A stretch of 64,000 nucleotides of DNA from Perkinsela sp. CCAP 1560/9 (lineage: Eukaryota; Protista; Euglenozoa: Kinetoplastea): NCBI GenBank assembly GCA_965644495.1, contig CBFFSA010000007.1, positions 682,001 through 746,000 on the forward strand, written 5' to 3'. Below are positions 5,715 through 47,783 of the stretch, piece after piece. The notes beneath the pieces were generated by a model, which was given only the letters and a program-made list of their open reading frames with translations, had not been told where the DNA came from and made no database searches. Both the position numbers and the translations under genes were made by a program. Within the stretch, counting starts at the first letter, position 1. Each line of letters begins with the position of its first letter.

Positions 5715-6002
5715 GCGAAATGGGGAGGGTTGTAGGGGATGAGAAAGAACTTGAATGAGAAGAGGGTAAAGGGGTAATTTGCAAAGGTAAAGGATGGAGG
5801 GTATATACAATATACATGTATGTAAGTTGGAGAAAAGTGATAGTGACAAATCAAATGAAGAGATATGCTTTCTTTAATGCTGGATGGTTACGCATAGCAA
5901 ACAAAAATGAGCCAGCCTGCCTTATGATAGGAACATAGAAAAGAGGCCGTCGTTAAAATCATTGTTACTAAGTGGAGGCGAAACGTGTTTTAAGGCACCT
6001 AA

Positions 6003-25893: not shown

Positions 25894-26128
25894 TTAGTGA
25901 AAATTAAGGCTCATGTTAGTCAAAATTGTTGCGCTACAAAGTAATCCCATAAATTCTATATCGAAATACTGCGTTATGGTCGTAGTACTACATACAAGTT
26001 TTCATGTATTGCACTGTATATATCAGTCGTAAGAACTGAAATTCAATTCACAGATGATATGCCATCAAACTAGCATAAAAGCTTCACTAAACGACTTCCT
26101 ACGCGGTCTCAGACTAACAATTCACATT

Positions 26129-29100
26129 CTATGCATAACTCACAAAACTCGATTCCAGGGAAGCTAAGGCCGCATCCCATGTCGTCCACTCAGGTATGAT
26201 TCGACGAGCGGAGTGTAACTTTGGCGTCTTCGTTAAAGGGTTATTGCAGAGATCTATCGTTTTAGCCCGTGCTTTGCTCCTATCATCACACCAAGTCTCG
26301 CACCAGAGCCATTCCTCAGGCAAAGAGAAGATCGGGACGACCTCCTGAACGTAGTTGGGCAAATCCTGATCCAGATTAGCTAAGCTATGCGATTCTCCTG
26401 CAAGGCTATCATAGATTGTGCGATACACATCTCCAGCTGTTCTCTCTCGAAAACGTGTAAGATCGACAACATAAATCGCGCTAATGTGATAATTTTTACC
26501 TTGTAGATGTGTTTTCCAAAAGCCGTGTTTCCAAAAACGAAACCCTTCGGTTTCCTTTCGAGCATTTTTGGTACAAAATGGAGTGTATCCCACTGCATGA
26601 CCTTGTAAATCCATATTGTACAACTCTTGCACGTCAGATCGTATGACTTGATCGGCATCGACGAATATGATTCTTTGCACAGATAAAGGAAACAATACGT
26701 CAAGAAACAGAACCTTATATGCCCATATCAAACGCTGCTTTTCAGACTGGGCATGCAGCCAATCAGGCCATTTGTAAGTGACGAGTTCGTAGTCGCAACC
26801 AAAAGACTTGGCGTATTGTGGGAGAACCCTTTTAAAAGAAGGTGACAAAAAATTCTCTACAAGCCAGAATTTCACTCTAGCTTTTGTGTGATTCGTAAGA
26901 GTATACATCATCAGTCGAAGAAACCTCTCATAAAGAAACCCGGAAGCGATGCTGAATATATGTACCCTGGGATCATTTGTGGCAGGAACTCCCTTCACCC
27001 CTGAGTCGGAGTAAAACGGAGTTGTGGTGGCGTCCTTTCCATAACTTGCTTCACACCTTTCAACTTTAATTTCTAAGTGAAGATCCGAAAATTTGTCAAT
27101 GGAAATAGAGAATGAGCTCCCTTTTACGTTCATATTGAACTCGGAACTCATGGACACATGTACTACGCGATATTTCTTGCTCCAATCTCCTTCTAGTATT
27201 GATATGGTCCATTTGCCTGGGCTCAGTTGCAACTGAAAGTAACCAAAATTGGACATCACAGTGGTATCGCGTGTTTCAGTAGTACCAGATTTTCGAGCGA
27301 ATAATGGCAAACCTGGAACTGGTTGCCCTGTGACACGATCCGTACATGAACCGGAAAGTACTAGAGAGCGTAGCTCGTACTGGACCTTTACAGATGATAC
27401 TAAGCCATTTTCAAGGAATATATTGTCCAAATCGTGGTGAGAGCGACTTGGAAAACTCAGCCAAGTTACGGGCTCCTGTACACTCATGGTGTATAAAACT
27501 GTTTTTGGCAAATCGTGGAACACAATGGGGGGATGTAAATTATCGTGAGGAACCCAGTCATAGTTGAAGGCGTATTCATAATACGCAGGTGAGGGTATTT
27601 CAAACATAATTCGTTTAGGATTCAGGAATATACGAAGTGATAGAGTAAATTTCTCGTAAAGAAGATTTGCCAGTACCAACAACTTAGACGCATCTGGAGA
27701 AAGAGGATTTATGATTGCCGAAATGGAGTGAAGACCATGGGATCGATTGTTGGGAGAAAAAGGTAATCCTGGAAGACAATCTGTATAAAAGATATCTCTG
27801 TCCCCATGCTTCCGTGCATCTTTGTCCACGATGAGCGAAAAGACAGCACAAAACGCACTCAGAGTACCATTATTGACGTTTAGCCTATGTAAGATGCTGT
27901 TTAGCTGAGCTGAAAACTCTGGCGTAAATAACCGCAACAATTGTTCATTAAAAAGTGCAAAATCCTCCTTTGAAAAGAGAATCATCCCATCGTTGGATGT
28001 GCTCAAATCAACACAGCGACCATTGGATATCAAAAAAGCAGGTAACGCACCGCAGACCTGAGCAGCGATTCTTTCATCCAATATGTAACGTGTATAATCG
28101 ATTTTATCAGGGTGATCCATATTATCCGGAAATTGCAGTGAAAAGTCATGAATTAGCGATTCTGAAAGATTATGTATTCGGGGTTTACTAGCGCTTGGGG
28201 TACTAGCGTCTGCCAAATTCGACAAGTAGGCCTCTCTCAAATAGTTTGCTATTTTAAGTACTTTAGAAAAGCTTTGAGTCGAAAGAGCACTAGTTATCGC
28301 ACGGATAGAAAAGTCTTCGCTGCTTCCTATAAAATAGAAGGCTACGCGTATCGCATTTTCATGCTCATTTCCATTTTTGAATGGAAAAGTGCCATTCACA
28401 ATTTGTGATACTATACCAAGCAATGAGTCAATTCCTTGCAAAGTGCGAATGTCAGATACTACGATGTGTGACAAATTGAAAATTCGTGTATCTTTATCGT
28501 CGGAAATCCAATTGCCGCTCTGTAAAACACGTATGTAGTCATCAATACTCAAAGTCACATATTTCGGAGCTGTATACAATGCTGGTTGTAGATGTATTAC
28601 AGAACCTAAATTTTTCGCAATGTTTGTTGCACTGTCTTTTGTCAAAGAGTTCAAAAGTCCCTTTTTAACCAAGGGTCGAAGGGCAACACGCTCCTCATCC
28701 ACCGCTTTTGCAATGTCTAAATCCTTTGCCAGCGGATTTCCGTTCATGAAAGTAGCAGGCACTTCGTTGCCTCTTCCTGACTTTCGAACGTATTCCATCG
28801 CTTCTTTGTATGTTGCGTACCATTTTCGATTTTTTAAAATTTTGGTCAACGAATGTGTAGTAAATGTGTTCAAAGTTGATACTATTAACGATTTATCTAT
28901 AACGACGTTCTTTGTACCTGCCAGTTTATACAGGAATTTATAACCAAGCGTTGGATCAGATGCGTCGTTTTCGGAAAGAAAGAAAAAGCAAGAGATTATT
29001 ATTTCTGCAAGCGAGACTTTACTTCTGGAGAGGCTCATATCATTTTCAACGTTTCTGATGTCTTCCATATCAAGGGTGATGGGCGCTGAAGTTTGTAGCT

Positions 29101-30813
29101 TGTGTTGATCTACAAGGATAACGCCAAATCGGACGGGAAATGACTGCAAATACGCTTGCACAAGATGAGCAAGCGTTTGAAGACCTCCTCGGGTTGAAGG
29201 ATCGAGAACTGCCACGTAATTTATAATATTTTTAGACACAGCTTGAGGATTTTCACTTAGGATTAAGAGATTCGGATCAGAGGGTAAATTTTCTGTATTA
29301 GAATCACCTTCCAGATTGTTCAGCCATTGCACATATTTACCATTGATAAACCAACGAGGGATAGAAGAAGTCGATGGTTTAAAAGGAACACCCAAAAGAC
29401 TCCTGAATAAGATTACAGCAGTATCACGAAAGCTGATATTGCTATGGCATTCTTCATCGTGAAGTTTCGTATCTTTGATACAAGCATGAAGAAGACGCAT
29501 CAACTCATCGATAAGAGCATGCTCTGCAAGCATAGCGCTACAAATTCGGAAAATGTCAATGTTATTAGCATAATACATTCGGTTGTTCAGTAAAAGCATA
29601 GATGCTCCATCGGCGACGTTATTAGTATCTTCCCTTGATTGATTTGGTAGCAATAGAGGACTGACCTGGCGTAAATCTACCCGCGACATTGCTTTCAAAG
29701 AATCTGGCAACCGAGAACTAATGCGACGTAAAAAATGTTGAGGGTTCGTTGAAGACATTATCTGCGCACATGCCTTCATTCCCAAGTGTTGTATTTCCCA
29801 GGGACGTAAACGAGAAGACCGGGGAATCGAAGCCTTCGTAATATTAGCAAGATGTTCTAGAAAATTAGGGAAAAAAACTGAGGAAATCTTTTGAAAAGCA
29901 CATCAAGCTCAATTCCGCAAGCGATGTTGGTCACATTTCCGGTTCTGTCGTTTCCCATAGTTACATTCCTGGTGCTTTCATCTACAGCACGATATTCAGT
30001 ACTTTTAATCGTCATTGCAGCTCCAAAGTTCTGGAGAGAAACATGTGCATCGCGCTCATCGGAGACTAGGTCACCTAAGAATGTGCTCTGGAATGTATAA
30101 CGCAGTCGCTGCGGATACTTTGCAAGAAGTCCTTGAATGGCGACATGGAATATGGCAGTTGATAGGTTTCCTAAACGACCATATAAAGTCATATTGTGAA
30201 CTTTGTAACCATGGTTTACATTTTCTATACAACCCGATTCAAAGTCATTGACCTCCTTTCGAGAAAGCATCAGAAAGCTCCCTTCAAGATCGTCAGGAGA
30301 AAAGACGTAATTTCCCTGATCAAGTTCCACAAACGTTTGCATGAACATATCATGCCTTTCAACGATATTTTTGACTGGACCACTCGAGAACAGATCAAGA
30401 AAAATTCCTGCATTCGCTAGACCTTCCGTCTTTTCCTTAACAGGCTGACGCTGGGAAGCAATTTTTGGAGAATAAAAGCGGGAAGCCAGACACATTTCAA
30501 ATAGATTTCGTTTTTCCAGGTCGTACGCCATCACAATATTACCCACTTCAACTACATGCTCCCAATGTGATTTGTATGAATTTCCTACACTTTTGCCCGA
30601 CGCTACAATTATTTGTGAGCTTGTATCGATGAATTCCCTGGATATATTCGTGTTTGTGCAGAATTCGTAGGCCTCGTCAAGTACAGAAGTTTCTGTCCAT
30701 GAGGAAAGTAAAGTTACTTCCACATCTTTGCAGGGGCAACAACAGAAAATTTGAAGGACTAATAGTAGGAATAGGTGTGATGCACCCGATGCTCTGCTGA
30801 TTGAATGTGTCAT
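26129..30813 (-). CDS. UGGT: UDP-glucose:glycoprotein glucosyltransferase, split by a frameshift at ~29871-29877
   Basis: Signal peptide plus VEVTLLSSW N-terminus in ORF 29857-30822. The C-terminal GT24 domain (HIFSIASGFLYERF, YKVLFLDVLFP, FVDADQ, NLDQDLPN, WLWCETWC, TIDLCNNP) is in ORF 26129-29785. A one-base shift in the T7 run joins them via RLRPWEIQHLGMKA. Confidence 0.93.
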
Positions 30814-31112
30814 CTTTCGCACTTTTCATGAATTCATTCTGTAATTCTACTGGTACATAATTGAATTGTATGAATTCATAAAAATCCTTCGTCTTCAACA
30901 ACAAATATCCATTCCACAAGGAAATAAAGTGATCAAAATTTGACCAAACATGTTCCGTTTTTTTCGGTATCATGGAACTGTATTTCAATAGAGTAATAAT
31001 GTAATGGTTTACCCAAAACGAAAATTTGTGGGACGGTTTGCTCACATCTGAAGTGATGGTGATAGTAATAATAATGTTTCCAATTTTTATTCAATTTACT
31101 TGCTAATTTTAT

Positions 31113-32408
31113 TCAATCACCGGATAAGAGCCATGGGAAGTATCTCTTGGGTTTACTTTTCCCTAGCGCACTTTCATTAGTACCCAAATTTGTAGCGTAC
31201 GTAAGGGCATAATGTTCGTGTAGCAAGTTCCATTCTTCCATTTCATCCAAATGTTCGATTGAATTTATGTATTGGAGAAGAGCTGGATTGTTCCTAAAAA
31301 GATTCTCCGCGTATTCCTTGAGATCTGAGGATATCGCTTCAGCCCAACCTGCCCTTCGAAATCTGTCTTCTAGGAGAAAGGGATTATTCCCAGATACAGT
31401 AGACAACAAAGGACAACCTTTGATTTCAAGAGCTCCGCACCGCTTCCTACCAAATGCGTCTTCGTTTCGAATAGGATCATACGATATTATTGAACTCTCA
31501 AGAAAGTTCGTTTGCAACATTTGTAGCAAAGAATCAACCACAGCAGAATCCAAATAAGAAAGGACGCATTCAAAGATAAACAAAGTTGGACGACCCCAGT
31601 CAAGGAAAGCACCAAGTATTTTACCCATACACGAAACATATCGCATATCCGAGGAAAGATAGATGAGTGATGTTCCCTTAACATTTTTGTGACTTTCAAA
31701 CTCAGAATCAGTCTCGTTTCGGTATCCGTTGTTTATAGATGTATACGAGGAAAAATCTTGATCCTTTGTTACCTCGGCGGATGCCTCGCAAATACGTACG
31801 TGATTTTTAAGAAGAAGAGCAAGCACTGTTTCACTTCTCTGAAGTATCTCTTTTTTCTTATCAAGTACTTCCTTAAAATCTACATCAACCCAACAGACGC
31901 CGTCAGGCAGAGGGGACTCATGTGATGACAAATGGGACTCTTCCATGTTAGTGACTGTTTTATTTCTTTCTCTCGCTTCAAGAAGCGCGAAGAATAACGT
32001 ATCATAGCCGCAACCAAAGTTCACTACTTGACACTGTGTAGAATGGTTTTTGAGAAAATGTGAAACTGCGGAGTGAACAGCCATAGTGCGAAGCCAATAC
32101 CCGCGATTCATCACCGGCGAATTTCCTCTTGCGCTTACTAAGGGTCTGGATATAGAATTTAAATGAGTCGATTGCTCAGAATTCTGTGTGCCTCCAATCG
32201 ATGTTGCAGTAAATTCTATGTTCGACTTTCCGTATTTCGAGACTCCTACGTGTTGTGAAATGTTTTGCTCAGCGTTCAATTCTCCAAGAGGATTGGTTGC
32301 GACGTATTCGAACAAACGTAAGTATGGATCATTCCAATACCCACGTGCGATAGCTCTTATTTTGCTTGCAGTGGAGTCATCATTGGTAGACTGAACTAGA
32401 TGAGTCAT
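31113..32408 (-). CDS. Leucine carboxyl methyltransferase (LCMT1/PPM1 family)
   Basis: VQSTNDDSTASK..GYWNDPY, SPVMNRGYWLR, QVVNFGCGYDT, PTLFIFECVLSYL, DEMEEW..HY. Confidence 0.92.
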   Translation of the reverse strand: MTHLVQSTNDDSTASKIRAIARGYWNDPYLRLFEYVATNPLGELNAEQNISQHVGVSKYGKSNIEFTATSIGGTQNSEQSTHLNSISRPLVSARGNSPVMNRGYWLRTMAVHSAVSHFLKNHSTQCQVVNFGCGYDTLFFALLEARERNKTVTNMEESHLSSHESPLPDGVCWVDVDFKEVLDKKKEILQRSETVLALLLKNHVRICEASAEVTKDQDFSSYTSINNGYRNETDSEFESHKNVKGTSLIYLSSDMRYVSCMGKILGAFLDWGRPTLFIFECVLSYLDSAVVDSLLQMLQTNFLESSIISYDPIRNEDAFGRKRCGALEIKGCPLLSTVSGNNPFLLEDRFRRAGWAEAISSDLKEYAENLFRNNPALLQYINSIEHLDEMEEWNLLHEHYALTYATNLGTNESALGKSKPKRYFPWLLSGD

Positions 32409-32843
32409 AAGAACTGTGCGAGATGAGATAGAACAATTGTTTCAAGCATCTCCTGGAAGCCAAAGATACTTAGTATATTGGTGACACGGGCAATAATTGG
32501 GAAGTACGATGCGAAATCGTATTGCGAGAGTTTATCACCCGGAAGATCATGTCTTTTCGCCACAATAACTCGAAAAAAACTAGAAATATACAGACAAAAA
32601 CCAGAAACATACATGTACATGTATGTTTGTGCTGCAGACACATTAGTTGTGCTATTATCAAAATAATTTTATTGTTTAACTATGATCTAGTCAAGTTTAC
32701 GAAAACAGCATCTGGAATCAGAAGTATAATATTGCCTTTTGATACAATATCAATATATTACATTGTGGTCGATGATGTACGTTCGATTTGATAATCTTAT
32801 AAAAATATTACTAGTGTGTATACATGTAGCATCTTATCACGAT

Positions 32844-33680
32844 TCAATCTAAGTGGTCTTCACCAGCATCTGTACCTCTCTTGAGTTGCTTCATATAGAA
32901 CTGAGCTACGCTTGCACGGGCAACCTTATTACGCTTTTCAAATAAACTCCGCTGATTATCTCGACGTTCCACATGTTTCGGGGGAGCCAACTTAAAAGGA
33001 AGAATAAAGCGCGCGGCTTCCCAAAAGTACTTACACTTCTCACCCAATTCAAGAGCGTGAATTAAATCTTCTACGCACAACAAACCGTATGCCTCCAAGT
33101 GATTCTCCACAACTAAGTTATTGTCAAGCGGGAGCAAATTTCCCTTGTCATCGCGATATCGCGCGTGATGCTTAACTAAATCACTGAGTTGTTCCTGTGA
33201 AAGAGAACCCGCGAGCACGTAATCCTGCAATACATGCATGTCTTCCGCAACGTCTTTCGTGGAAGGAAGTATAACTGCGTCGTGAAGCTGGGACAAGCGA
33301 TATTTTTCTAATAGAATCTTCGTAATGCGGCTGACATCTGTGGAGCCTTTGGTTCGAACTGCCAGCAATGCTCCTCCAGTCACCGGTGTCTCCAATGTTG
33401 CCTTTTCCAAATGCTTTACTCGCATGTTGACTTTGCGCTCCAAGCGCTCTCTGCGTGACGCATTCAGCATAAACTCTTTCGCGGATCGGAGTCGCTTCTG
33501 CTTGGTTCCCGCCACAGCTTTTTTAGCGGTGTAGTGAGGTCGGGACAACTGATGGGAGCGGATTGCGTTTCGTATTTTCTGGTTCCGGTGTTCCTCGATT
33601 GATTTGCGACGCTGAAGTATGGTTACACGTACTCTCTCCCCTTCGCCCGCACCAATGTGCTTCGGGATGTTTTTTCCCAT
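32844..33680 (-). CDS. Ribosomal L7/L30-like biogenesis protein (RLP7-like)
   Basis: RVTILQRRK, LAVRTKG, RLSQLHDAV, LPLDNNLVVENHL..GLLCVEDLIH, FILPFKLAPP. Confidence 0.85.
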   Translation of the reverse strand: MGKNIPKHIGAGEGERVRVTILQRRKSIEEHRNQKIRNAIRSHQLSRPHYTAKKAVAGTKQKRLRSAKEFMLNASRRERLERKVNMRVKHLEKATLETPVTGGALLAVRTKGSTDVSRITKILLEKYRLSQLHDAVILPSTKDVAEDMHVLQDYVLAGSLSQEQLSDLVKHHARYRDDKGNLLPLDNNLVVENHLEAYGLLCVEDLIHALELGEKCKYFWEAARFILPFKLAPPKHVERRDNQRSLFEKRNKVARASVAQFYMKQLKRGTDAGEDHLD

Positions 33681-33923
33681 TGTAAGAAATGCAAGTAGTG
33701 AAAATCAAGGAAAGCGGAATAATGTTAGGAATATTCAAATCATCAAGATATATGGCATATTATATGATATAAGAATCAAAAAGTTTACCTTTCCGAAATA
33801 TTAGTTCCCGAAAATGAGTCATTCAGTTCAACGAACAAGGTTACTGTTTGCAGGCTCATATGTTCCCAACCATTAAGGCTGAGCTTGGGCCAAATCTGAG
33901 CATGTGATAAAGCTGAGTCATAG

Positions 33924-35840
33924 CAGAGGTCCCTAAAACTATATATAGATAGTTTATAGTGCTTCAAGAAAATTTATAAACCACCGTCCGGGTTATTATA
34001 CCTAGGAGGTATAATAAGTGTCCCTAGGTATAATAACTTTGCTTTGCAAAAATGGGTAAAAAAAACTTCGCGGCGCGTTCTTTTTCGTATTCCCCACAAC
34101 GTGTTATGATCCATTTGCAAGTTTCCCTATTGCGCCTGGGGAAACGTGCGCGAGTGTGGGAGGGAGTTTATTTTCTGGGGCTTTCCGGGGTAAAAGAACA
34201 TGAAATGCCATGAATACATATTTTTTCGTGGATACTATACCCCAACTCGTCAAAACTCTTGACAATGTCAATCTGATTTCTTGGTAAGTTTTCCTCATCA
34301 AACGCAACATTGAAATTTACGAGCAGTGAGGGGAAAAGATTGTGTTGCTTCGTAGTCGACAACAAAGAGCATGCACCAGCATGCTTTTACGTGTCCAGGC
34401 GAAGAATTAATACTTTCGGAGTGTTAGAGTTTAATTAACCCTTTCGGGGTGTTAATGTATGTTAGGGCGATCGTCCGTAATCCCGTCTTTGTGGCATAAA
34501 TCAGGGAGGCAATCAGAAAAATTGTGAAAAATGATGCGGTAGGGGGCAGGGGGAGGTATAATAAGGACCCTAGGGACACTTATTATACCTAGGAGGTACA
34601 ATATGTGTTCCTAGGTATAATAACCCGGACGGTGGTTTAGTACTATAAACCTCGTTTATAGTACTATAAACACTATATAGTATTATAAAAACTATATGGT
34701 GTTTATCAGTGTTTCATGTCCAGGAGGGCGCTCGGTAGACAGATCCGTCGATGGACCTGGAGGAATTTCGCAGGGAAGGAGAGAGCCGATGGAGGTGTAG
34801 AGGCTTAGAGGTCACGAGATGTCAGGTGGAGCAAGTGGTGTGGATACGCTGACGCGTAGAAAAAAGTGAAAAGAGTTCTAGTTTTTGTACAGAAATGGAA
34901 AAAGACGGGATCCTATAGCTCACAACAAGTTCTTCCCATAATGCTCTTTCCTTGTAGCGTGCAAACCGCCTTACAGTTGTACCTTGTTGTCATACTACAA
35001 CACGTTCTCAGACGGCCGCAGAGGTCGCGATGCGGCAGGAACAGATGAGTTCTCATCCAGAGGAACAAGTGGACGAGACATTACCAATCTATCCGTCTTC
35101 TCACAAGCGCAGAGCGACGCGACAACGCTCGCGTTCTGTTCCTCGTCTATCTAATCCTTTTACCCGAGTTGTAGAGGAGGAAATCCCGCAAACAAGCGTT
35201 CCAGACCCAAGATTGCACTCAGCGAACCAAATGGTGGAAGTATTTGGTGGTCTCTGTTGGAGGCGCTTGTTAGTTGGAGGCGCTTCTTAAGAACCAGCAG
35301 GAGCAGCAGTCTCTTTGGGAGCGGCGTAGCGCCCAAGCAAGTGAACGGTTTGAGACGCTTTAAGTAAAATACGGATCGGATCTTCGCTCCACGGCGGTGA
35401 ACGGGCGCATATGGCATCAACTCCCGGCACACCGGGAGATCAACCTTTGACACTGGACAAAGTCCGGGATGAAGTGCGAAAGATAAAAGATCTCTTGGAT
35501 GATTATGTCGTGGAATTGAAGGTAACCTGGTATTGGACAGGAGAGTCCCCAGCGTGTGCACAAACATGGAGAGGCGTGGCACACACGACGGGTCCTTGCT
35601 GGTGCCTGAGAAGGATTATGATGTGTTGGAAAATCGTCTCCGTGTGGGATTACGTATGCCGACTACATTAACTCCGGAATTGGAGGATAATATCATTGGA
35701 GGATAATATTGGAAAATTAAAATTCCAGGATCCAAGATTAAAATTTACTAAGAAAAATAGTAAAAAAATATAGTTATTATATATAATGTTTCAGAGTTTA
35801 TAGTACTATAAAATAGTTATTGTAGTTTTACTGACCTCTG
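33924..35840. mobile_element. hAT-like DNA transposon derivative with both TIRs and 8-bp TSD
   Basis: TIRs CAGAGGTCCCTAAAACTA / TAGTTTTACTGACCTCTG. TSD AGTCATAG at 33916-33923 and 35841-35848. No intact transposase; superfamily inferred from TSD length and CAG termini. Confidence 0.88.
33979..34637. mobile_element. MITE with TA TSD nested in the hAT-like element
   Basis: TA|AACCACCGTCCGGGTTATTATACCTAGGA ... TCCTAGGTATAATAACCCGGACGGTGGTT|TA. The empty site is visible in copy 1 near 8500 (AAGAAAATGTGTAGTACTAT). Confidence 0.93.
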
Positions 35841-35914
35841 AGTCATAGTGTTAGTCTTTTCAGGACAAATAGCACAAATAATGATAATCCACAAAATCCA
35901 ATGTCGAAGCACCC

Positions 35915-36583
35915 TTAATTTGCCTTTTTTCTTCTCTTATCAAATTTTCCCATAGAAGCAGTGGCAATATTTTTTTCTGTATGAGCAATCGCTCTTAGCT
36001 TTTCGGCATCCCGTGACTTCGGTTTGCGATCCTCTGTCCCACTTATTCCCCCACCGGCACGCTTCTTGTTTTTCAACCTCTTTCCCTCGATCACCTTCTG
36101 TTTTCGCTTTTTAGACTGTGCTTTGTCTAGAAAAGGATCTCCCTTCACGGCATTTGGAAGGTATGTCGTCTTTACCTCTTCAGCCCACTCAAACTTCCTA
36201 TTATGTTGTCGAGCTCGCTTTCCCCAACGATCTCTCCACTCTTTCGTGTTATCATCCCACATCTTATTTTGTTTTCTTCCCTTTGGTTTAATACCTTTTT
36301 TGCGGGCGAATTTTTCCCACGCCGTTTCTGTGTGACTTACTTGGGGAATGGGCTTCTCCCGGGGCAATACTTGCACCGGGGAAGGACATGTCACAATCTT
36401 GCCCTCCGGCAGAATGCGGCCTGGTAGTTCGTTGAGTTTATGTGAAAGAGTAGGCAGAGCGCTGCGCAGCGTATCAATCAAAGTCTTGTCGAAATCTGCG
36501 GCATGAGGGTCTGTAGAAACACCAGGACAATACCCGCAAAGGTTGCCGACATCGAATTCAACAGCACTGGGCAACTCCGTCAT
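35915..36583 (-). CDS. RRS1: Ribosome biogenesis regulatory protein RRS1
   Basis: FDVGNL, LPREKPIP..TAWEKFARKKGI, WDDNTKEWRDRWG, ATASMGKFD. Confidence 0.93.
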   Translation of the reverse strand: MTELPSAVEFDVGNLCGYCPGVSTDPHAADFDKTLIDTLRSALPTLSHKLNELPGRILPEGKIVTCPSPVQVLPREKPIPQVSHTETAWEKFARKKGIKPKGRKQNKMWDDNTKEWRDRWGKRARQHNRKFEWAEEVKTTYLPNAVKGDPFLDKAQSKKRKQKVIEGKRLKNKKRAGGGISGTEDRKPKSRDAEKLRAIAHTEKNIATASMGKFDKRRKKAN

Positions 36584-36783
36584 AATATACTACGTAAATG
36601 AAAAAAGGGTTCGAAAATGTACAGAGCGTTTTTCAACCAAATCAAGTTCTACGGAGTAAAGCACATCACTTCAAACGTCAAAAACACGAAGAACAAGAAC
36701 GTACTAAAACTATTTTCTCCAATAAAACCCACAATCAAAATCAACCCTTTTCACCAACCCTATCCCCCCTTTCCTACCTTCCC

Positions 36784-37947
36784 TTACTCCTCCCCTTCTC
36801 CCTCCCCTTCCCCCTCCTCCCCCTCCCCCACCGCCACCCACCTCTCCTCCCACACCCCCGTCCCCTCACACTCCATCGCATCCTCCCGCCCCCCCCGCGG
36901 CCGCAGCCCAAACCCGCTCTCCGACACCCCCCGCACCACCCCCAGCCCCCGCCCCAGCGTGCTGAGCACCACACTTCGGGGATCCGACACCGAGACGACC
37001 TCGGCGCGTATCGAGTCCCCGGGGCGGAAGCACGAACTCAGGGGGCAGTGCGTCGTAGCACTACTACTAGCACTCCCCCCTCCCCTGCCGCCCCCCGCGA
37101 CCCCCACCGGGACGTCCGGCCGTACCTCCTCGGGGCGCAGCACGGCGTGGTGGGGGAAGGGGAGGGGGGCGCCGCGCAGGGTGGTGAGGTCGACGAACAC
37201 GGCGGTGCGGGTGACCCGGGTGACGGTGCCGGTGACGGGGTCGTGCAGGGCGGGGAGGAGGGCGTCGAGGGGGGGAGGGGGGAGGGCGAGGGGGGTAGAG
37301 GGAGGGGGGAGGGGGGGAGAGGGGGCCGTGGGTGAAGGCGTAGAGCCGTGGGAAGGCACCGTGGTGGAGGGCGCATTGGAGCCGTGAGTAGGCACAGGGG
37401 TAGAGGGAGCAGTAGAGCCGTGAGAAGGGACAGGGGTAGAGGGGGGATTAGAGCCGGTAAAGGGGACGCCGGTAGAGGGGGGGTTAGAGCTGTTAGAGGG
37501 GGCAGGGGTAGAGGACGTGTTCGTAGGCAGAACGGGAGAGGACAGCGAAGTAGCCGTGGTAGAAGAGGCTTTAGGGGGGAAAGCGGGAGCGGAGGACGAG
37601 TTAGAGGGAACAGCGGTGGAGAGAGCTGCAGGGGAGGTGGAGGGAACCGGGATAGCGGGAGGGGTAGAGGCGTTGGAGTAGGAGGTGACAAGCGTTGTGC
37701 CGGATGGGAGAGAAAGGGAGTCGTTGTATAATGCAAACCGAGCCGGTCGGGAGAGTGGACGTACGGAGATTGTGGTGGAAGGAGACGAAGAGGAGGGGGA
37801 GGAAGCATCGGGGAGTAGAAGTAGACCGAGCCTCGCGGAGAGGAGATGGGAACCGTAGGGGTAGACGCCTTCACCGCAGGTGAGTTGGGAGGCGTCGCCG
37901 AGGGGGGTTCCGGGGAAGACAAGGGTATGGTGGGGGAGGAAGGCCAT
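36784..37947 (-). CDS. CSL4: Exosome cap subunit CSL4 with long Pro/Ser/Thr insertion
   Basis: N-terminal VFPGTPLG...GEGVY; S1 domain LPALHDPVTGTVTRV..AVLRPEEVR..CFRPGDSIRAEVVS..VLST..LGVV; C-terminal MECEGTGVWEERWVA. Confidence 0.85.
   Translation of the reverse strand: MAFLPHHTLVFPGTPLGDASQLTCGEGVYPYGSHLLSARLGLLLLPDASSPSSSSPSTTISVRPLSRPARFALYNDSLSLPSGTTLVTSYSNASTPPAIPVPSTSPAALSTAVPSNSSSAPAFPPKASSTTATSLSSPVLPTNTSSTPAPSNSSNPPSTGVPFTGSNPPSTPVPSHGSTAPSTPVPTHGSNAPSTTVPSHGSTPSPTAPSPPLPPPSTPLALPPPPLDALLPALHDPVTGTVTRVTRTAVFVDLTTLRGAPLPFPHHAVLRPEEVRPDVPVGVAGGGRGGGSASSSATTHCPLSSCFRPGDSIRAEVVSVSDPRSVVLSTLGRGLGVVRGVSESGFGLRPRGGREDAMECEGTGVWEERWVAVGEGEEGEGEGEGEE
37338..37515. repeat. 36-bp minisatellite (~5 copies) inside CSL4
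   Basis: Units like GTAGAGCCGTGAGAAGGGACAGGGGTAGAGGGGGGA, encoding PSTPVPSHGSTA-type 12-mers. Confidence 0.8.
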
Positions 37948-38362
37948 AGGAAAAAATGGGATGGTGGATGAAACGGTGTAGGAACAGACAGAAGGTTCTG
38001 TGTATAAAAACTCGATTGTTGTTTGATTATTGGATTGTACGAAGATGTTTTCAAAATACTGAGCTTGTTATAATTGCTCTATAATATAAGTCGTATATGT
38101 TTTAATGATTGGTCTGTTGACGTACTAGCCTTTGTCGGTTCTAAACCGATAAGAGTGAATGAACAGGTTTCTTTGAAAGATTTTCTGTTGCTGCACAAAT
38201 GTACTAATCAGCACCCACAAGATAAATTCCATGGATGACTGCATGCTATGATATTCCAAACGTACAATATTCATGTAAGAATTTCGCGAATCTGACAACC
38301 AAGTATTCTAGAATGTTTAAACTCGTTGAATTTTATCAAACTCAGTATCCTTGAAGTTTGCA

Positions 38363-41300
38363 TTACGATATTGCTTTTCGACGTCGCTGGACTTTTTTGT
38401 GACTAACCGACTCTACGCGAGGAGAATCAGTTAAGAACGCGTGCAGCGTGGAGGCCAGTGACTTATCCCTACCTGGAGACATTACAGGGACCAAAGAACG
38501 CATTACAGGAGAGACGCCCTCTTGTACCTTCGATATACTTTTCTCCTGTAGCTGTTCACGATGCCGGCGTGCCCATACACCCACCGGAGAGGCCTCTACA
38601 ACACCTGATTTATTTGACAACGTTCTTTTAGCGGGTGCTATGTGATTCGCCTTTGTAGGCCCCCGAGGCTTGCTTCTTGAGGTCTTGGACTTATTATTTG
38701 CTGTAGCTACGAGCGAAGGAGATGCGGAATGTTTATGCGAAGGATTCAAGCGGTTTTGAGTTGAAGAAAGGGGAGTATTGACATCTGCTTGTGATTGTGA
38801 GAGTCGTCGTTTTGGTAAAAGAGCGACTGTATCTGTGGGCAGTGTGTTGGCGATTTCTTTTTGCTTCGTAGCAGGTGATCGACGTGTTAAAACGGGCGTG
38901 ACATTGCGGAGAAGAGTTCGCGATGTGGGTGAAGATTGGAGTGTACGGTCCAATTTTTTAGTCTTTTCTAGAGGTTTGTTTGCAGACTTTCTGGTACTGG
39001 CACAGATTCCACGTGTTGCAGTTTTGCGCAGACGAGGAGGAGTGGATAATTTGGCTCTCGCCGTTGTGGGAAGGTTGTCTGCACCCGATTTTGATTCCCG
39101 ATTTTTAGACCTCACATCCTTTGGACCTTTCTGATGCGTCAAGCCGGTCCTAGACTTGGATCGCTTTGACTCCTTCTGTTTTTCGTAGGAGCGCGAGCGA
39201 TTGCGTTTTTGTGAACGAGAAACAGAGATCGAGGCTTTAAATAAAGATTTATGTTTTGTTACGCTGCGCGTGCCTAATTCAGTTTTTGAAGTCGGTAAAA
39301 CGTTCTTTCTGGATGACCCTTTAGATTCTGCTCTGGCCTTTACACGCGCTGCAATAGAGTGTGCATTCAAAGGTGACGAATGTATCACGGAGGGAGAAAC
39401 CGAACTACGTTTGCTTTTACCTTTGACAGGCGATGGGCTGCGACTGTTACTTTCAACGGGTGTACTTCCGTCTGAAATTGTGGAAAATGTTTGCGAAAAT
39501 ACGTCTAGCTCAAGAGCGCTGGTTTCAAGAGCTTCGTCGGTAATACACATCGGAGCTGAGGAATTTTTTTCGAGGACGGATTCGCGATTTGTGCTACAGA
39601 CATGCGCAGAGGAACCTGGAAAAGCATTTTTTTTTGTAGAGAGCAATGCAGAACTGGCGTTCAATTTGGTTGATAAACCAGTGCGAGTGTTCAATGCTTT
39701 GCGCCCAGGGTTGGATCTGCTAGATTTATTTTTTCCAGTAGTCTTGGCTAGGACTTTCCCGCTCTTCTTTGATGAAATACTTGGAGATTGTTCTATAAGC
39801 ATGCTGATGTTATGAAGTACACTAAATCCAGAATCCATTTCAGGGGGTGGTACTTCCGCACTTCTTTCTGGCAATTCTATTGACACACTGTGATTATAAG
39901 ATGCATGCTCCATTGCGATATCGGAACTTAGTGGCAGTGAAAGACTTTTTTGTCCGAATGCTCGCAGTTGTGCACTTAGGGCCCGAACTTCATGTTCACG
40001 TCCGGCAACTCTGCTGTGTATTAAAGAGAGCTCTGTAGTCATTTTTTCACTTTCTTGCGTGTATTGACCAGTAAGCGGGTCATTAGAGGGGTTCAAATCC
40101 CTACCTAATGATCTGGCCCGAGTATAGGTCTCACGTAATTGATGTAGGGTTCGAGTCTTGCGTTCGACATCCTGAACAAAATTATGAGGATGTACCATAG
40201 CGTGCTCTTTTTCAGATGCTTCTGTAGCTTCCATGTGCTTTTGACGCTTTGCTCGATGCTCGATCTCGTCTTCTCTTGTTCTTATGGACTTTTCCTGGGC
40301 TGCAGTAACTGCGTCAATCCAATGTTGCTTTCGAGTATTCGTAAGTGCCAATGCTTCAGCATTCACTGATGTCGCATGTTCGTACTCTATACGAGTTCTC
40401 TTGCGATCTCCTCGAATAGTATCAAGATCTTTTTGGCATTTTGCCAGGATATCTTGTGATTCTCTCCCTTGTTCCAAAACTCGGAGCAATTGATTTTTCC
40501 GCTCAGCGACTTCTTTTTGAGTCAAGCGGTGGGTACAGTATTCATCAAACAGTGTTTTAGCAATTGCATTAAGTTGCACGGTAGCCTTTTCTTTTACTTC
40601 CACCAGACTATGAACAAGTGAGGCTCTGAAAAAATTGCGTCGAAGAGATGTGAAACGCAGAGCTCCGCTTAAAGCTCCTCTCCATCCCGCGGCAACACCG
40701 CTAGCGTACGTATGCCGTAACCGTGCCTGCACACTTTGAGCATACTCTGGGAATGTTCCCAAACCGTCTCGAATGCGTGCCAAGACCCTTGAGTAATTTA
40801 TGGAAACATACAGTCGAGCGTCACGTAACGTTGTCAGATGACGTAGCGTATTAAGTGTCATGCCGACCGAGCGCGACTCATTCGCAATGCTCACTATGGT
40901 GGTGAATAATCCCCCACCAAGAAGGATATGAGAGCAAAGTTTTTCTATTGCATGAAGTGGACGCTTCATATTAAAATCTTTATTTTCTGAATCAACAGCA
41001 GTCCCTCCAGGAGCAGTCAGAATTCCAGTCGACTGTGAAGGAGTCAATATTTGTTTGGAATCAAGGGTACCATGCTCCACTAAAGATTCCATTGAGCTCC
41101 AAAACACGTCGATTAAATGCCGAGAAGGGTTGCCTTGCCACACCTTAGTATGAGACTCTTTATCAGAAAGTTGGGGAATATAGGCCAACGTAAGTGTAGA
41201 CCGTGCATCGCGTCCCTGTTCTATTGCTTGCAGAATCTCAACAACAATAAGGATGGCGCCTGTTTCTCGGGATTCTGCTTCATACTTTTCATCAGCGCCA

Positions 41301-41899
41301 GGTACGTTCTCTGTTGCTAAAAAGGAAGTGAAGAAATGATGCAAATCCTGCGCACAGCTCAATTCTTGGTAGTCCTCATGTGACGCAAACAATCCATGAT
41401 TGGTATGCCACAAGTCAAGATCAACAGCTTCTGGATTCTGTTTTCCATATAAACTAGTATGAAGAACTGAAGAGTTTACGTTTCGCTTTTTACGCAATGT
41501 AGTATCCCGGATAGTAAGAACTTCATTGTCCGGAGTAATATGGAGGGCTGCTGCCGAGCAGTAGCGCTCTGCTGCATCTGGTGCGGTGACAATTGTACGC
41601 AAAGAGTTCTTGCATAACGCCAGGAAAATTTCGGGTGTCTCGGTAGAGCTCCCAAGAAATACAAGCGAGACGTTTACGCCGCATAGAGCATGCTTCACTT
41701 TCCGTTCCAAGACTTCACGGTACAGATTGGGAACCGCATCAGAAGTTGTTATGTTTGGATAAATGGCTCCAGGAGCAAAACTTTCCGCTTCAGAACCCTT
41801 CAGTTTAAGCGTATGAGAACCAATTTTACTCCAAACTGGCTCTTGTTGAGCGCGACGATTCAGAAGTACCGCAACATCAACGGTGCCGTGGTTAGTCAT
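38363..41899 (-). CDS. Divergent kinesin-like protein (degenerate motor, coiled coil, basic disordered tail)
   Basis: LYREVLERKVKHALCGVNVSLVFLG and LLGGGLFTTIVSI..MTLNTLRH...VSIN resemble the start and end of a kinesin motor. The P-loop GxxGxGKT and the switch motifs are absent. Confidence 0.6.
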   Translation of the reverse strand: MTNHGTVDVAVLLNRRAQQEPVWSKIGSHTLKLKGSEAESFAPGAIYPNITTSDAVPNLYREVLERKVKHALCGVNVSLVFLGSSTETPEIFLALCKNSLRTIVTAPDAAERYCSAAALHITPDNEVLTIRDTTLRKKRNVNSSVLHTSLYGKQNPEAVDLDLWHTNHGLFASHEDYQELSCAQDLHHFFTSFLATENVPGADEKYEAESRETGAILIVVEILQAIEQGRDARSTLTLAYIPQLSDKESHTKVWQGNPSRHLIDVFWSSMESLVEHGTLDSKQILTPSQSTGILTAPGGTAVDSENKDFNMKRPLHAIEKLCSHILLGGGLFTTIVSIANESRSVGMTLNTLRHLTTLRDARLYVSINYSRVLARIRDGLGTFPEYAQSVQARLRHTYASGVAAGWRGALSGALRFTSLRRNFFRASLVHSLVEVKEKATVQLNAIAKTLFDEYCTHRLTQKEVAERKNQLLRVLEQGRESQDILAKCQKDLDTIRGDRKRTRIEYEHATSVNAEALALTNTRKQHWIDAVTAAQEKSIRTREDEIEHRAKRQKHMEATEASEKEHAMVHPHNFVQDVERKTRTLHQLRETYTRARSLGRDLNPSNDPLTGQYTQESEKMTTELSLIHSRVAGREHEVRALSAQLRAFGQKSLSLPLSSDIAMEHASYNHSVSIELPERSAEVPPPEMDSGFSVLHNISMLIEQSPSISSKKSGKVLAKTTGKNKSSRSNPGRKALNTRTGLSTKLNASSALLSTKKNAFPGSSAHVCSTNRESVLEKNSSAPMCITDEALETSALELDVFSQTFSTISDGSTPVESNSRSPSPVKGKSKRSSVSPSVIHSSPLNAHSIAARVKARAESKGSSRKNVLPTSKTELGTRSVTKHKSLFKASISVSRSQKRNRSRSYEKQKESKRSKSRTGLTHQKGPKDVRSKNRESKSGADNLPTTARAKLSTPPRLRKTATRGICASTRKSANKPLEKTKKLDRTLQSSPTSRTLLRNVTPVLTRRSPATKQKEIANTLPTDTVALLPKRRLSQSQADVNTPLSSTQNRLNPSHKHSASPSLVATANNKSKTSRSKPRGPTKANHIAPAKRTLSNKSGVVEASPVGVWARRHREQLQEKSISKVQEGVSPVMRSLVPVMSPGRDKSLASTLHAFLTDSPRVESVSHKKVQRRRKAIS

Positions 41900-42213
41900 T
41901 TAATAGAAATGTTCAGTGTTAAAGAAATGCATCATACGCGTAAATTCATTGGCCAATATTTATTGCCCAAGCAAAAATTATCTTTCTTTTTTAAGCTTAA
42001 TGTAAAAAGATAAATGTTTAAAAAATAGTATTCTCCTACATACTGTACAGATGTATGACAGAAAGAACTTTTGTTACATTCGATTGCAAAAGAAAAAAAG
42101 TGGACAATTTAAAAAAAGTGTACAATTTACTTACCGTCACAAGATTGGTTTTCGTGGAAAGGTTAGCTAGCAACAATCTTTGAAGCATTGCGGAATGAAA
42201 TATTATGTTTCGT

Positions 42214-42912
42214 TCACCCTACCAATCCTCTGTGCCTTCCATTTATTTGAAGCTTTTTATTGTTCGCCAATACGAGCACAAGGACGCGTTCTGATACGTT
42301 GCTAACATCAACCTCACCCTCAAGGCGGTTGTCATTTAGATTGAGCTCCTGTAATAACACAGGCAAACTGCTTAAAAAAATCTCTCCGCTGAACCGGTTT
42401 TCGTTTAGATGCAACCATTTTAGACGAGAGGGCAAGTGGGTCAGGTCGAGGCTACCGGTGAAGTCATTTTTCCCCAAGAAAACTTCAGTGAGACTGCGAG
42501 GAAAGGTAGGTAAGGGTACTTGTCCAGTGAAATGGTTGTCACTAAGGTAGAGTTCTATTAGATTTTTCGGCAAAGAAGAAAAACGAACTTCTCCTTGCAA
42601 ATCGTTGCTATGCAGATAAAGTGCTGTGAGTGTTTGCGGAATATACTCCCAGCTTATATTACCCTTCAGTCCTTGACGAGCCCAGTGGAGGCGATGCAAT
42701 TCTGTGTATGCCGTGTCAAATGCTACTCCACTCCAAAACGTGCATGGTACACCTTCTTTCCAGCTTACATGAAGGGGGTGCACATTCTGAAGTAGGCGCA
42801 GCAACAAAATTTCTGGAGGAAGCACGAGACCGCGTACTTTTCCGCAGCGAACAGGCGTCATCGCGTCAGCATGCGATACACACGAGAGAGAGTATCGTGA
42901 TGAATGTAGCAT
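42214..42912 (-). CDS. Leucine-rich repeat protein
   Basis: PCTFWSGV cap and LPxxLxxLxLxxNxFxG repeats. Confidence 0.9.
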   Translation of the reverse strand: MLHSSRYSLSCVSHADAMTPVRCGKVRGLVLPPEILLLRLLQNVHPLHVSWKEGVPCTFWSGVAFDTAYTELHRLHWARQGLKGNISWEYIPQTLTALYLHSNDLQGEVRFSSLPKNLIELYLSDNHFTGQVPLPTFPRSLTEVFLGKNDFTGSLDLTHLPSRLKWLHLNENRFSGEIFLSSLPVLLQELNLNDNRLEGEVDVSNVSERVLVLVLANNKKLQINGRHRGLVG

Positions 42913-43274
42913 GAAAGTTTAAAAAAGCTGGAAATAATAAAAGATAAAGCTGAATAAATCTAATAAAAACAAAGAAATTCAGTGTTTTTGATAAACACAG
43001 ACCGAGAATTGTACAAAAAAGAGAAGCAAAGTGGACAATAAAAACGAAGAGAGTGATCCCTTATTAGCTTTATATCTTAATGTGCACGATTCACGTATAA
43101 ATACACGTGAGGAATTTTGGGCCCTCATATTGGGCCTCACCCGCAGCCTCTCACGTATTTATACTGTTACAGTATAAATACAGTCTGTATACATTCTGTA
43201 TATCCGATCCTGGGTAAATAGAACAAAATAAACCAAATGAAAACACTGGTCCCAGTATCGTGAAGTGTCAGACT

Positions 43275-44354
43275 TCACCGCTGCAAACTCCTTTGAGGTC
43301 TGCCTTTATTCAAAACATCAAGCAACTGGCACGCTCTACACAGTCTTTGTGATGTCATGTAGCTACATCTCTCACATTTGCCAATGTCTGACGACCTCCA
43401 ATCACCCACATTTATTTCTCCTTTTCTCATGCATTGTCCGTGAAGTTCAATATTAGGCGAAGTTCTCGTGCTACTTTCTGTAATAGTATCTCGATTCTCA
43501 GGATCTTTTCGTTCAAACGATTCCCCACTCTGCACAATACGGAGCACGGACCTACTGTCGACGGATTCCAATTCCTTTAAAAAGTTTCGAACATATCCTC
43601 TGAATGCTTCCTTTGCGTAAGTACATTCGGTAGAGAAATAATCCAGCTTGCGGTGGCGCGCGTAGAGCACAATTTCTTTTTCGTAAGCATATTTCAAAGG
43701 TTTAACTCGAGGAAGCGTAAATCCAGCTTTCTCACCTGTGTTGGTAGAAATTGAGGTGCAACGAACAAGACGCGCGCTATCACCTCTTAAAAGATTCATT
43801 AGAATAGTCTCGGCCAAATCATCTAAATTATGGCCCGTTGCTATCTTGTCTACGTGAAGTTGTATCGCACCGCGATCCAATGCTTGTCGACGAAAAACGC
43901 CGCAAAAAGTACAGTTCGATTTTGTCCCTATATGGGACACAATTTCGTCCATCGACCACCCATACAATTCTCTATAGCTTAGCACGTGAAGAGGCAAATT
44001 GTACTCCATCATATTCCTCTGAACTGTACGAAGAGAATCATCTCGGTAACCACGAATGCCTTCATCAATACTCAACAAAACAAGCTCTAAACCATAATGG
44101 TGAGTACGATTTAGGCGAAACAATACATCAAGAAGGACGGTGCTATCTTTTCCACCACTCGCACCAATGGCAACTCGTTCACCCGAGTTAAATAATTGAT
44201 ATTTCGTAATAGTGCCGTGGACTTCCATCTCAAAAATTTGCAAAAAGCAAGAACGACACAACAGAGCGCCATTTTTAGGGCGCCGCAATACAGGTGCTGA
44301 TTCCCTGCAGTGCTCACAGATTGGTCCGATCGATGCGCTTGAATATGGTGGCAT
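43275..44354 (-). CDS. CTU1: Cytoplasmic tRNA 2-thiolation protein 1
   Basis: CxxC pairs, PP-loop [40 protein letters not shown]-terminal CERC..CRAC. Confidence 0.97.
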
Positions 44355-46274: not shown

Positions 46275-47783
46275 CTACGAAAATCTCCGATGTGACCGCA
46301 TGATTGTTTGAATATGGTTTGCATTTTCCTCCTGAATAAGAGCATAGGGGTTAGTCTCCTTTTCCGCCACCCTTCGACTTTCAATGCTACAATACTCCAT
46401 CACACACGCATAGGGGGACAACAACAGCTGGTAATCCAGCACAATCGGGGTCGCAAAAAAGGCAAAGAAAATAACCAGCGCCACGACGGTGGCCACAGAA
46501 AACACGGCCGTGCCTACCCAGTACGCCGCAGCGAGGTAGGAGGTCGTGTTTAACACGTGGTTGGTCCCGAAACACCGTTTCAGTAGACTCAGCGTCTGGG
46601 ACAGGGTAAACACCGCCACCACGGGCAGGACCAGCAGCAGGGTGTAGCTCATGGTCGTGCTCACCAGGTAGTGCAGCCCGGTGGCGCGGGGGAGTACAAA
46701 CCCACACGCGGCCATCTCCCCAAACAGTAGGGCCCCGGAGAGCAGGGCGCGTCGGGAGTACCCGCGGGGGAGCCGCCGGGCGTTTCGCTGTAACGTCTTA
46801 CGTAAGGCTTTGTGTACTGTCCGGGGGGTTGAGCCAATGGGTTGTGACACGGCAATGTTGGTTTTGTTATTGTTGTTAGGTTGCGAGCTGCTGGGAGGTT
46901 GTGCTAACCTCTCACTGGTCCACAGGACCGTGGCACTGGACTCCTCCCCGGGGGCGGAGAGCAACCCCTCATGAGGGGAGAGGGCTCCGAGCTCCGAGGG
47001 GGAGGCACGGAGGTAGGTGTGGGTGAGGGCGGTGTAGAGCCGTTCTCGGGGGAGGTACCAGTTGTATCGAAGGTTGCCACAGGCAATGCCAAGGAACAGG
47101 TAGCACAGCAGACGGAGTTTGAAATAGGGAATCGCGTGGGGGAGATCACCGCCTAGAGCCCAGCCGAGAAGGAAGGCGACAACGTAGTACAGCTCGCGGG
47201 CAGTGTCGGGCATGAATCCCTCGTGGAAGAACATGACGGCAACCCAGAAGGCGAGGAAGTAGGAAATGAGAAGTGGACGACTAGTCCATGTTGGGGCCAC
47301 CTCGGCCGGCGTGGACAGGTTTGTAGAATGCGAGGAAGACCGGAACAGGGCCTTCCATGTAGATAGGGCGGACGATAGAGATTCCCAGGAAAAGTGATCG
47401 GAAAATAGAACCGTTTCCCCTATCGGAAAGACATTCGACTGATTACCCCATTTTATCTTTTGGTGCATTCCCCGCACGTGAGGTTCTGTAACCATTTTTC
47501 TTTCATGTTTTGATGAATTGTTCCGGTCTTTTGACGACGACGTACTTCCAATAGAAGGGCCGCTTTTCGTGGGATACGGTTCTTCATACTGTAGTAAGGA
47601 CAGGGTGAATATAGGAATCCATACCAACAAGCCCCATTTTACACGGCTAAGGGTTTCATTCCAAGTAAGGGGAGGGATACGGTGTGAACGTGGAGTGCGT
47701 GGGGTACGAGGACTTGACCGAGGTGTATGCTTTCCATGTCGACGAGAGGATAGACGACCTGCATGAGCTTCACTGTCATCCAT
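46275..47783 (-). CDS. Multi-pass membrane hypothetical protein
   Basis: 502-aa ORF with roughly 7-8 hydrophobic segments; no family recognised. Confidence 0.7.
   Translation of the reverse strand: MDDSEAHAGRLSSRRHGKHTPRSSPRTPRTPRSHRIPPLTWNETLSRVKWGLLVWIPIFTLSLLQYEEPYPTKSGPSIGSTSSSKDRNNSSKHERKMVTEPHVRGMHQKIKWGNQSNVFPIGETVLFSDHFSWESLSSALSTWKALFRSSSHSTNLSTPAEVAPTWTSRPLLISYFLAFWVAVMFFHEGFMPDTARELYYVVAFLLGWALGGDLPHAIPYFKLRLLCYLFLGIACGNLRYNWYLPRERLYTALTHTYLRASPSELGALSPHEGLLSAPGEESSATVLWTSERLAQPPSSSQPNNNNKTNIAVSQPIGSTPRTVHKALRKTLQRNARRLPRGYSRRALLSGALLFGEMAACGFVLPRATGLHYLVSTTMSYTLLLVLPVVAVFTLSQTLSLLKRCFGTNHVLNTTSYLAAAYWVGTAVFSVATVVALVIFFAFFATPIVLDYQLLLSPYACVMEYCSIESRRVAEKETNPYALIQEENANHIQTIMRSHRRFS

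Follow-up and report, generated by a model that had tools for sequence, protein, structure and literature searches.

What process turns one strand of an essential gene abruptly from C-rich to G-rich, and does it act elsewhere? The question is raised by the gene for the exosome subunit CSL4 in a 64,000-nucleotide stretch (hereafter the window) that covers positions 682001-746000 of contig C7, in a genome of 21 Mb and 110 contigs. The genes of the window lie on the minus strand and have no introns. A sequence-only reading had proposed that CSL4 and three other genes of the window harbor fixed replication origins or recombination hotspots. We analyzed 264 kb of contig C7 in detail; the rest of the genome was covered by pattern counts only.

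A sharp inversion of strand skew within CSL4

The CSL4 gene hosts the strongest of the window's islands (Table 1). Its product has a weak Pfam match to ECR1_N and can be aligned to CSL4-like proteins, which have 180-221 aa; a word-based homolog search with the C-terminal part returned nothing, whereas a HMMER search did find homologs, and the syntenic ortholog in a relative adjoins RRS1. On the plus strand, GC skew passes from -0.61 (36601-37000) to +0.62 (37201-37800), and GC content is 0.74 in the core as against about 0.43 elsewhere, which confirms the C-rich-then-G-rich order first described. At fourfold-degenerate sites of the coding strand, residues 241-270 use A0 C20 G5 T0 and residues 331-360 use A0 C0 G22 T0, with a background GC3 of about 0.38. 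The jump had been described as one of both G and T. Its G part held, but raw AT skew to the right of the flip is +0.32 (A-rich), and G/T richness is visible only at two-fold sites and Ile codons.

The significance of the skew jump was assessed with 500 synonymous-codon shuffles per gene. None of the 500 matched the jump in CSL4, MORN1 or the CCCH-type gene, and 26 of 500 reached it in the membrane-protein gene (P ~0.05). Thus, of the three further islands proposed for the window, two stand and the third is borderline.

Table 1. Features of the window and of the surrounding part of contig C7 (window coordinates unless marked C7)
Feature	Position	Strand	Remarks
CSL4 exosome subunit gene, 387 aa	36784-37947	-	ORF
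CSL4 island, left arm	36500-36950	C-rich on +, G-rich on -	CSL4 3' end, its 3' UTR, intergenic spacer
CSL4 island, core with overlapping arms	36950-37200		flip centre ~37,125-37,145; GC3 near 100%
CSL4 island, right arm	37200-37980	G-rich on +, C-rich on coding strand	
Pro/Ser/Thr insertion in CSL4, ~130-150 aa	37273-37725	-	lineage-specific, in C arm
36-bp minisatellite	37341-37514		within the Pro/Ser/Thr insertion
Gly/Ser-rich 18-aa insertion in CSL4	37060-37113	-	at the flip, within the conserved C-terminal region; from alignment
Gly/Glu C-terminal extension of CSL4	36787-36822	-	not in relatives
Island two, MORN1	4800-5850		centre ~5,380-5,560
Island three, 842-aa CCCH-type gene	52100-53400		centre ~52,705; Q/E/N microsatellite in one arm
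Weak island, 502-aa membrane-protein gene	46300-47300		centre ~46,650-46,800
Split UDP-glucose:glycoprotein glucosyltransferase region	26129-30822	-	two ORFs, in both assemblies
198-aa ORF	7548-8144	-	by eye, like the C-terminal restriction-like endonuclease region of a site-specific non-LTR retroelement
Three near-identical 970-aa ORFs	C7 656115-659027, 667225-670137, 680310-683222		start with Arg-Arg-Asp-Asp-Tyr repeats
Mobile-element-end skew peaks	C7 ~838,290; C7 ~640,400-640,850		the latter in a convergent strand-switch region

The CSL4 island is identical base for base in a second public assembly (ENA ERZ24900291), which also carries four further islands. This assembly looks like a second haplotype and probably shares source material with the first (possibly the same material) rather than being an independent sample; with that limit, islands at faulty assembly joins were not borne out. 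The two assemblies agree over 18 kb of the window (25916-44099) in all but two single-base homopolymer indels, against a divergence of 0.5-1.3% in most neighbouring blocks, and this stretch looks like a loss-of-heterozygosity or shared-haplotype tract.

Two further kinds of ORF were noted in the region. A Pfam search with the 198-aa ORF gave no match, and pieces similar to it occur at C7 ~619,000, ~629,500 and ~771,200. The three 970-aa ORFs are spaced 11-13 kb apart, the third reaching into the start of the window.

Islands recur with one polarity

In the 264 kb of contig C7 we found 15 clear genic islands, together with weaker ones. Five are in plus-strand and ten in minus-strand genes, and every one is C-left/G-right. 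They measure about 1.3 kb and follow one another at a mean spacing of ~15-17 kb, irregularly (CV 0.79). When genes were picked solely by peak GC3, and thus blind to skew, 16 of 17 flipped in the same sense (P=1.4e-4). Genome-wide, a C-tract followed by a G-tract was matched 144 times as against 10 in the reversed order, and a looser form of the pattern 772 times as against 165, although in these counts matches overlap one another and some are transposon ends. Polarity is therefore not random, and we conclude that the phenomenon is real and genome-wide. The host genes are unrelated, and include those for MCM5, an E1 dehydrogenase, ribulose-phosphate epimerase, a kinase, an LRR protein and a CCT-like chaperonin subunit (the last named by sequence resemblance).

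The islands had been said to ignore gene boundaries. This is true of the arms, which reach into UTRs and other non-coding DNA with strong G/C skew and more frequent A. It does not apply to the centres: all 15 are set 250 bp or more into coding sequence, in genes of one-strand clusters, whereas such DNA makes up 44% of the non-transposon total (P ~5e-6). It had also been argued, from the symmetry of the pattern between strands, that unidirectional transcription cannot explain it. Symmetry alone is insufficient, because a gradient from C at the 5' end to G at the 3' end of genes looks alike on both strands; what rules out such a general gradient is that background genes show none. Ordinary transcription here leaves a slight T>A bias only, with no G/C skew. 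Across the 264 kb, no leading/lagging skew extends beyond 1 kb between islands, and there is no divergent strand-switch region. Two non-genic skew peaks in the same 264 kb are mobile-element ends with one-sided C or G richness (Table 1).

Two mirrored arms overlap across the centre

Skew does not vanish at fourfold sites but is strongest there. From -300 to -150 of the centre, their composition is A.05 C.70 G.10 T.16, from +150 to +300 it is A.14 C.12 G.68 T.07, and the background is A.27 C.20 G.21 T.32. The two arms are thus reverse-complement mirrors, alike in plus- and minus-strand genes, and the effect is over by 700-800 bp. We then placed centres by fourfold sites alone and viewed two-fold sites on the purine strand. 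Their G fraction is 0.25 at -400 to -200, 0.53 at -200 to -100 and 0.68-0.82 over -100 to +500, returning to background by +700. Hence, the G-gain tract of each strand begins about 200 bp before the centre, and it is the overlap of the tracts of both strands across ~350 bp that makes the core GC-rich. The flips are sharp to ~200 bp, and within one island gene codon choice in one half is the opposite of that in the other. The preference for G is the same whether C, G or T precedes it and whichever base follows (0.58-0.65), so that runs of G are not specifically favoured. Of the 45 G4 motifs in the 264 kb, 36 fall in islands; near the centres, all 36 are plus-right or minus-left, a sidedness that is partly circular because the centres were chosen by skew.

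A simple k-mer test of the 15 cores found no shared motif or homologous sequence of the ARS-like or mobile-element kind, and arm-to-arm complementarity did not exceed that given by composition. Searches for tRNAs and Rfam families gave no match. An origin of the islands in hairpins or quasi-palindromes was rejected, as 14 of 15 cores fold like composition-matched shuffles. The only core to fold better (z -4.3) is in a short minus-strand gene at C7 809,731-810,278 with a Pro-rich start and an Arg-Gly tail. A reading as CpG islands was also rejected: CpG observed/expected is 1.02 in the background and 0.84 in cores, so that the background is not CpG-depleted and the cores do not stand out as CpG-rich.

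Model fits to silent sites favour directional mutation

Downstream of the centre, C at NNY sites drops to 0.27 (background 0.39), and upstream, G at NNR sites drops to 0.27 (background 0.42). That both fall below background on the "wrong" side means that GC-biased conversion (gBGC) is not the driver. Moreover, when the downstream T/C ratio is scaled to background, fourfold sites give 0.43 and two-fold sites 1.56 (z 6.5), with an upstream mirror of 0.59 versus 1.53 (z 3.8). The T/C and A/G ratios are 2.6- to 3.6-fold apart between the two classes of site. T drains to G only where the transversion is silent, and an additive base preference therefore cannot explain the pattern.

An equilibrium fit in which the outward strand receives extra A>G and T>G and a little C>T gave a deviance of 42 (11 df), and a directional-mutation fit with finite time gave 26, which is still significant. 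Additive preference (102), G-protection (92), deamination only (576), gBGC only (991) and gBGC combined with deamination (243) all did worse, whereas an abasic-site model (45) did about equally well but with unbounded parameters. With rates inferred from composition and a background matrix of unpolarised SNPs, these fits suggest that, on the strand leaving the centre, A>G exceeds background about 5-fold and T>G about 15-fold, and that some weak C>T is added.

Fourfold SNP density between the two haplotypes is 14/1029 in islands versus 49/3904 elsewhere, a ratio of 1.09 from few SNPs, unpolarised because the relatives are saturated at silent sites. The mutation model predicts about 1.6, with which this value is compatible at low power while lending no support; none of the 14 island SNPs is G/T. 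In-frame repeat indels, conversely, cluster in islands. The genome has matches to REV1, three Y-family and four B-family polymerases, MutS homologs, a SPO11-type protein and JBP, the presence of which does not discriminate between mechanisms. The REV1-like protein has 654 aa (L015:1423-3387, minus strand), and the matched yeast chain 985 aa. Cdc6_C was not detected in the genome, which is uninformative because kinetoplastid ORC is divergent.

Islands are confined to one sampled lineage and alter proteins

The closest named relatives of the host are the prokinetoplastids PhF-6 and PhM-4 by NOT3 and Perkinsela by MCM5. The MCM5 tree puts the host outside a well-supported Perkinsela CCAP 1560/4 group and fixes its position no further. 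On the syntenic contig of a relative (ENA ERZ25072283), the CSL4 (221 aa), membrane-protein and CCCH genes have a GC3 of 0.41-0.44 and show no skew flip. In four relatives, including Perkinsela CCAP 1560/4, we found no island at MCM5 and none in ~90-96 kb (Poisson P 0.004-0.04). By these comparisons, the islands are specific to the host lineage among those sampled.

A Perkinsela-group relative (ENA ERZ25074155, positions 883-20902) has a composition of its own. Within 20 kb, its GC3 varies between 0.44 and 0.99, third positions of MCM5 are almost 100% G/C along the whole gene, and in most genes C exceeds G in the first third and G is increased in the last. This is either a weaker, gene-wide relative of the islands or a separate GC-biasing process.

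The island genes keep open reading frames, and their proteins align with orthologs throughout. That the process rewrites protein sequence, as first proposed, is nonetheless upheld. In addition to the CSL4 insertions (Table 1), MCM5 has a poly-Gly insert, and otherwise invariant residues are replaced at 17 of 144 positions inside its island versus 7 of 237 outside, in a region that is also more variable in PhM-4. Where arms can be aligned, the outward strand shows, at codon positions 1-2, 114 changes to G versus 54 from G, as compared to 274 versus 244 in control regions (P=7e-4). In island arms, Pro makes up on average 12% of residues upstream and Gly 15% downstream, versus 4.6-4.7%.

Discussion

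In composition, the islands behave like the skew jump of an origin and are not explained by known codon or conversion effects. A bias that is point-symmetric, blind to transcription and context, and several hundred bases long points to bidirectional synthesis, or strand opening, from a fixed place. We thus favour the reading, at a probability of about 0.5, that the islands are the mutational footprint of a fixed bidirectional start of DNA synthesis, most likely a replication origin. Priming of each leading strand would take place across the origin, on its far side, and the first few hundred bases of the strand would be made in an error-prone or poorly proof-read phase, during which the outward new strand receives dG or oxidised dG opposite T and A. 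Equivalently, the displaced template could be lesion-prone and copied with dC by a Rev1-like activity. The G-rich arms would form G4-prone, slippage-prone DNA and may reinforce the site. A fuller version is tentative and somewhat less probable: that this lineage evolved about a thousand position-fixed, motif-free intragenic origins with mutagenic initiation (A>G, T>G, over ~800 bp). It is with the same reserve that we suggest that an origin map and a polymerase hand-over tract may be recorded in the sequence, and that protein evolution of the host genes may be driven by them.

Several observations count against origins. There is no leading/lagging skew past 1 kb, which efficient fixed origins might leave, and SNP density is not raised; the sidedness of G4 motifs at T. 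brucei origins is opposite, and the initiation zones of L. major are AT-rich. Nor does the origin reading explain why the centres lie deep inside coding sequence.

Internal bidirectional Pol II starts or R-loop sites form the alternative that survives best, although we regard it as unlikely. G (and T) would then accumulate on the displaced non-template strand, in the manner of GT-rich trypanosome promoters and of CpG-island-like promoters. An arm of about 600 bp is a width suited to promoter-proximal R-loops. The polarity agrees: downstream of T. brucei starts, a G/T-rich coding strand drives directional transcription, the G-rich strand pointing away from the start as it does here, and divergent promoter pairs give an island-like polarity (Wedel et al., 2017; PMC5579346). 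Internal starts would also be compatible with origins; in L. major, origins and start regions coincide (PMC7511235). However, the T. brucei promoters are outside genes at transcription start regions and are rich in T runs (PMC5579346), whereas our fourfold sites are T-poor, all 15 centres are inside genes, including the essential CSL4 and MCM5, and none is at a gene-cluster boundary. The arms are equally strong in sense and antisense despite the long one-strand clusters, and ordinary transcription leaves no comparable G/C skew.

The other half of the sequence-only reading, recurrent double-strand-break hotspots, fares less well and seems rather improbable to us. Resection followed by error-prone fill-in on the outward strand, with or without GC-biased conversion, would give the geometry of an origin; the point symmetry and arm length resemble resection, a SPO11-type gene is present and in-frame repeat indels cluster in the islands. 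Meiotic hotspots show a point-symmetric mutation asymmetry over ~1 kb per side; in human ones, the forward strand acquires A>N and C>N to the left of the break (Hinch et al., 2023; PMC7615360). This is the side opposite to the gains suggested here, which are on the forward strand to the right of the centre. Peaks of gBGC raise C and G on both strands, unlike the islands, and the two-fold sites exclude it as the driver (0.27 versus 0.39 and 0.42). The sole clear haplotype-block edge (~44,100) is not at an island.

We find it doubtful, slightly more so than break hotspots, that selection wrote the islands as a DNA element, such as paired G4/G-rich arms for a protein, a chromatin boundary or a kinetochore. 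The bias is extreme, 36 of 45 G4 motifs are in islands, SNP density is not raised and L. major sites with a like signature bind KKT1 (PMC7511235). Yet G is favoured whatever its neighbour rather than in runs, neither a shared motif nor arm complementarity was found, and intergenic DNA would be a cheaper place for selection to act. The divergence between fourfold and two-fold ratios (2.6- to 3.6-fold; z 6.5 and 3.8) is, moreover, impossible under an additive preference.

Fixed sites of fork convergence or fork barriers, where G-rich leading templates face incoming forks and final gaps are filled outward with errors, appear more improbable still. The new-strand geometry is equal, leading strands pass each other at termination (PMC6728351), and L. 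major termination zones are GC-enriched (PMC12890776); but termination zones are normally broad whereas the flips are sharp to ~200 bp, and nothing places islands midway between other features. Assembly artefacts, mobile-element relics, codon optimisation and mRNA hairpins are very hard to credit, since, although G/C runs are error-prone in reads and two skew peaks in 264 kb are mobile-element ends, frames stay open through islands that align with orthologs and recur in the second assembly, opposite codons are used within one gene, and cores fold like shuffles in 14 of 15 cases with no Rfam match.

Of the two explanations first offered, then, the origin one fits best, albeit with no long-range skew, and the hotspot one is made less likely by two-fold sites, which exclude gBGC, and by the opposite human polarity. 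Were the islands origins, a eukaryotic origin map would be readable from sequence alone at ~100-bp resolution, in a group for which there is dispute over how origins are specified and how many exist (one per chromosome or thousands). From the sharp tract one could also test directly how faithful the initiation phase is and where leading strands are primed. Independently of its cause, a focal, strand-specific process prevails over codon usage, adds Pro/Ser/Thr and Gly/Glu tracts and alters conserved residues of essential genes (CSL4, MCM5). Islands also hide genes from gene callers and bias phylogenies.

Comparison with known origins

In yeast, leading strands are primed across the origin, and Pol delta extends the first ~180 bp (PMC6728351); the overlap of the arms across the centre fits this far-side priming. 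Human constitutive origins have an excess of T>G and T>C, the strand bias of which inverts at the origin, more long indels, a local rise in GC, skew and G4s (Murat et al., 2022; PMC9645720), and vertebrate origins show skew inversions (Massip et al., 2019; PMC6547456). The GC rise, skew inversion, G4s and indels are shared with the islands, and the strand-flipping T>G and T>C would match the changes suggested by the model fits. However, the human effect reaches ~2 kb to either side and is linked to CpG islands, whereas there is no CpG depletion here (observed/expected 1.02) and a single base occupies 65-70% of fourfold sites.

Among kinetoplastids, the centromeric origin of L. major shows a local flip of G/T skew from negative to positive, and its G4s lie on the reverse strand upstream and the forward strand downstream, whatever the direction of transcription and with no broad replication skew (Damasceno et al., 2020; PMC7511235). 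The flip sites carry AcH3, base J and KKT1. The local flip, G4 sidedness, independence of transcription and absence of broad skew are thus shared. Leishmania, however, has one such site per chromosome, at strand-switch regions, whereas here there is about one per 17 kb, centred in coding sequence; the islands dominate synonymous sites and alter proteins, and T skew at fourfold sites does not flip in the same way. In T. brucei, origins mapped by SNS-seq are intergenic and run from poly(dA) to poly(dT) (Stanojcic et al.; PMC13179062), alike in having strand-polar composition and G4s around the centre but with the opposite G4 sidedness. SNS-seq is itself biased by G4s, which makes it unsafe as a sole method (PMC12890776). 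In L. major, initiation zones are AT-rich (PMC12890776).

In view of the L. major flip (PMC7511235) and the GT-rich directional promoters of T. brucei (PMC5579346), the statement that no such elements had been described in kinetoplastids was too strong. In the literature searched (mostly open, with few subscription journals) we did not find islands of this density, strength, intragenic position and protein effect. The type of signature is known, including from one kinetoplastid; what is new is its density, its strength, its position within genes and the remodelling of the proteins that they encode.
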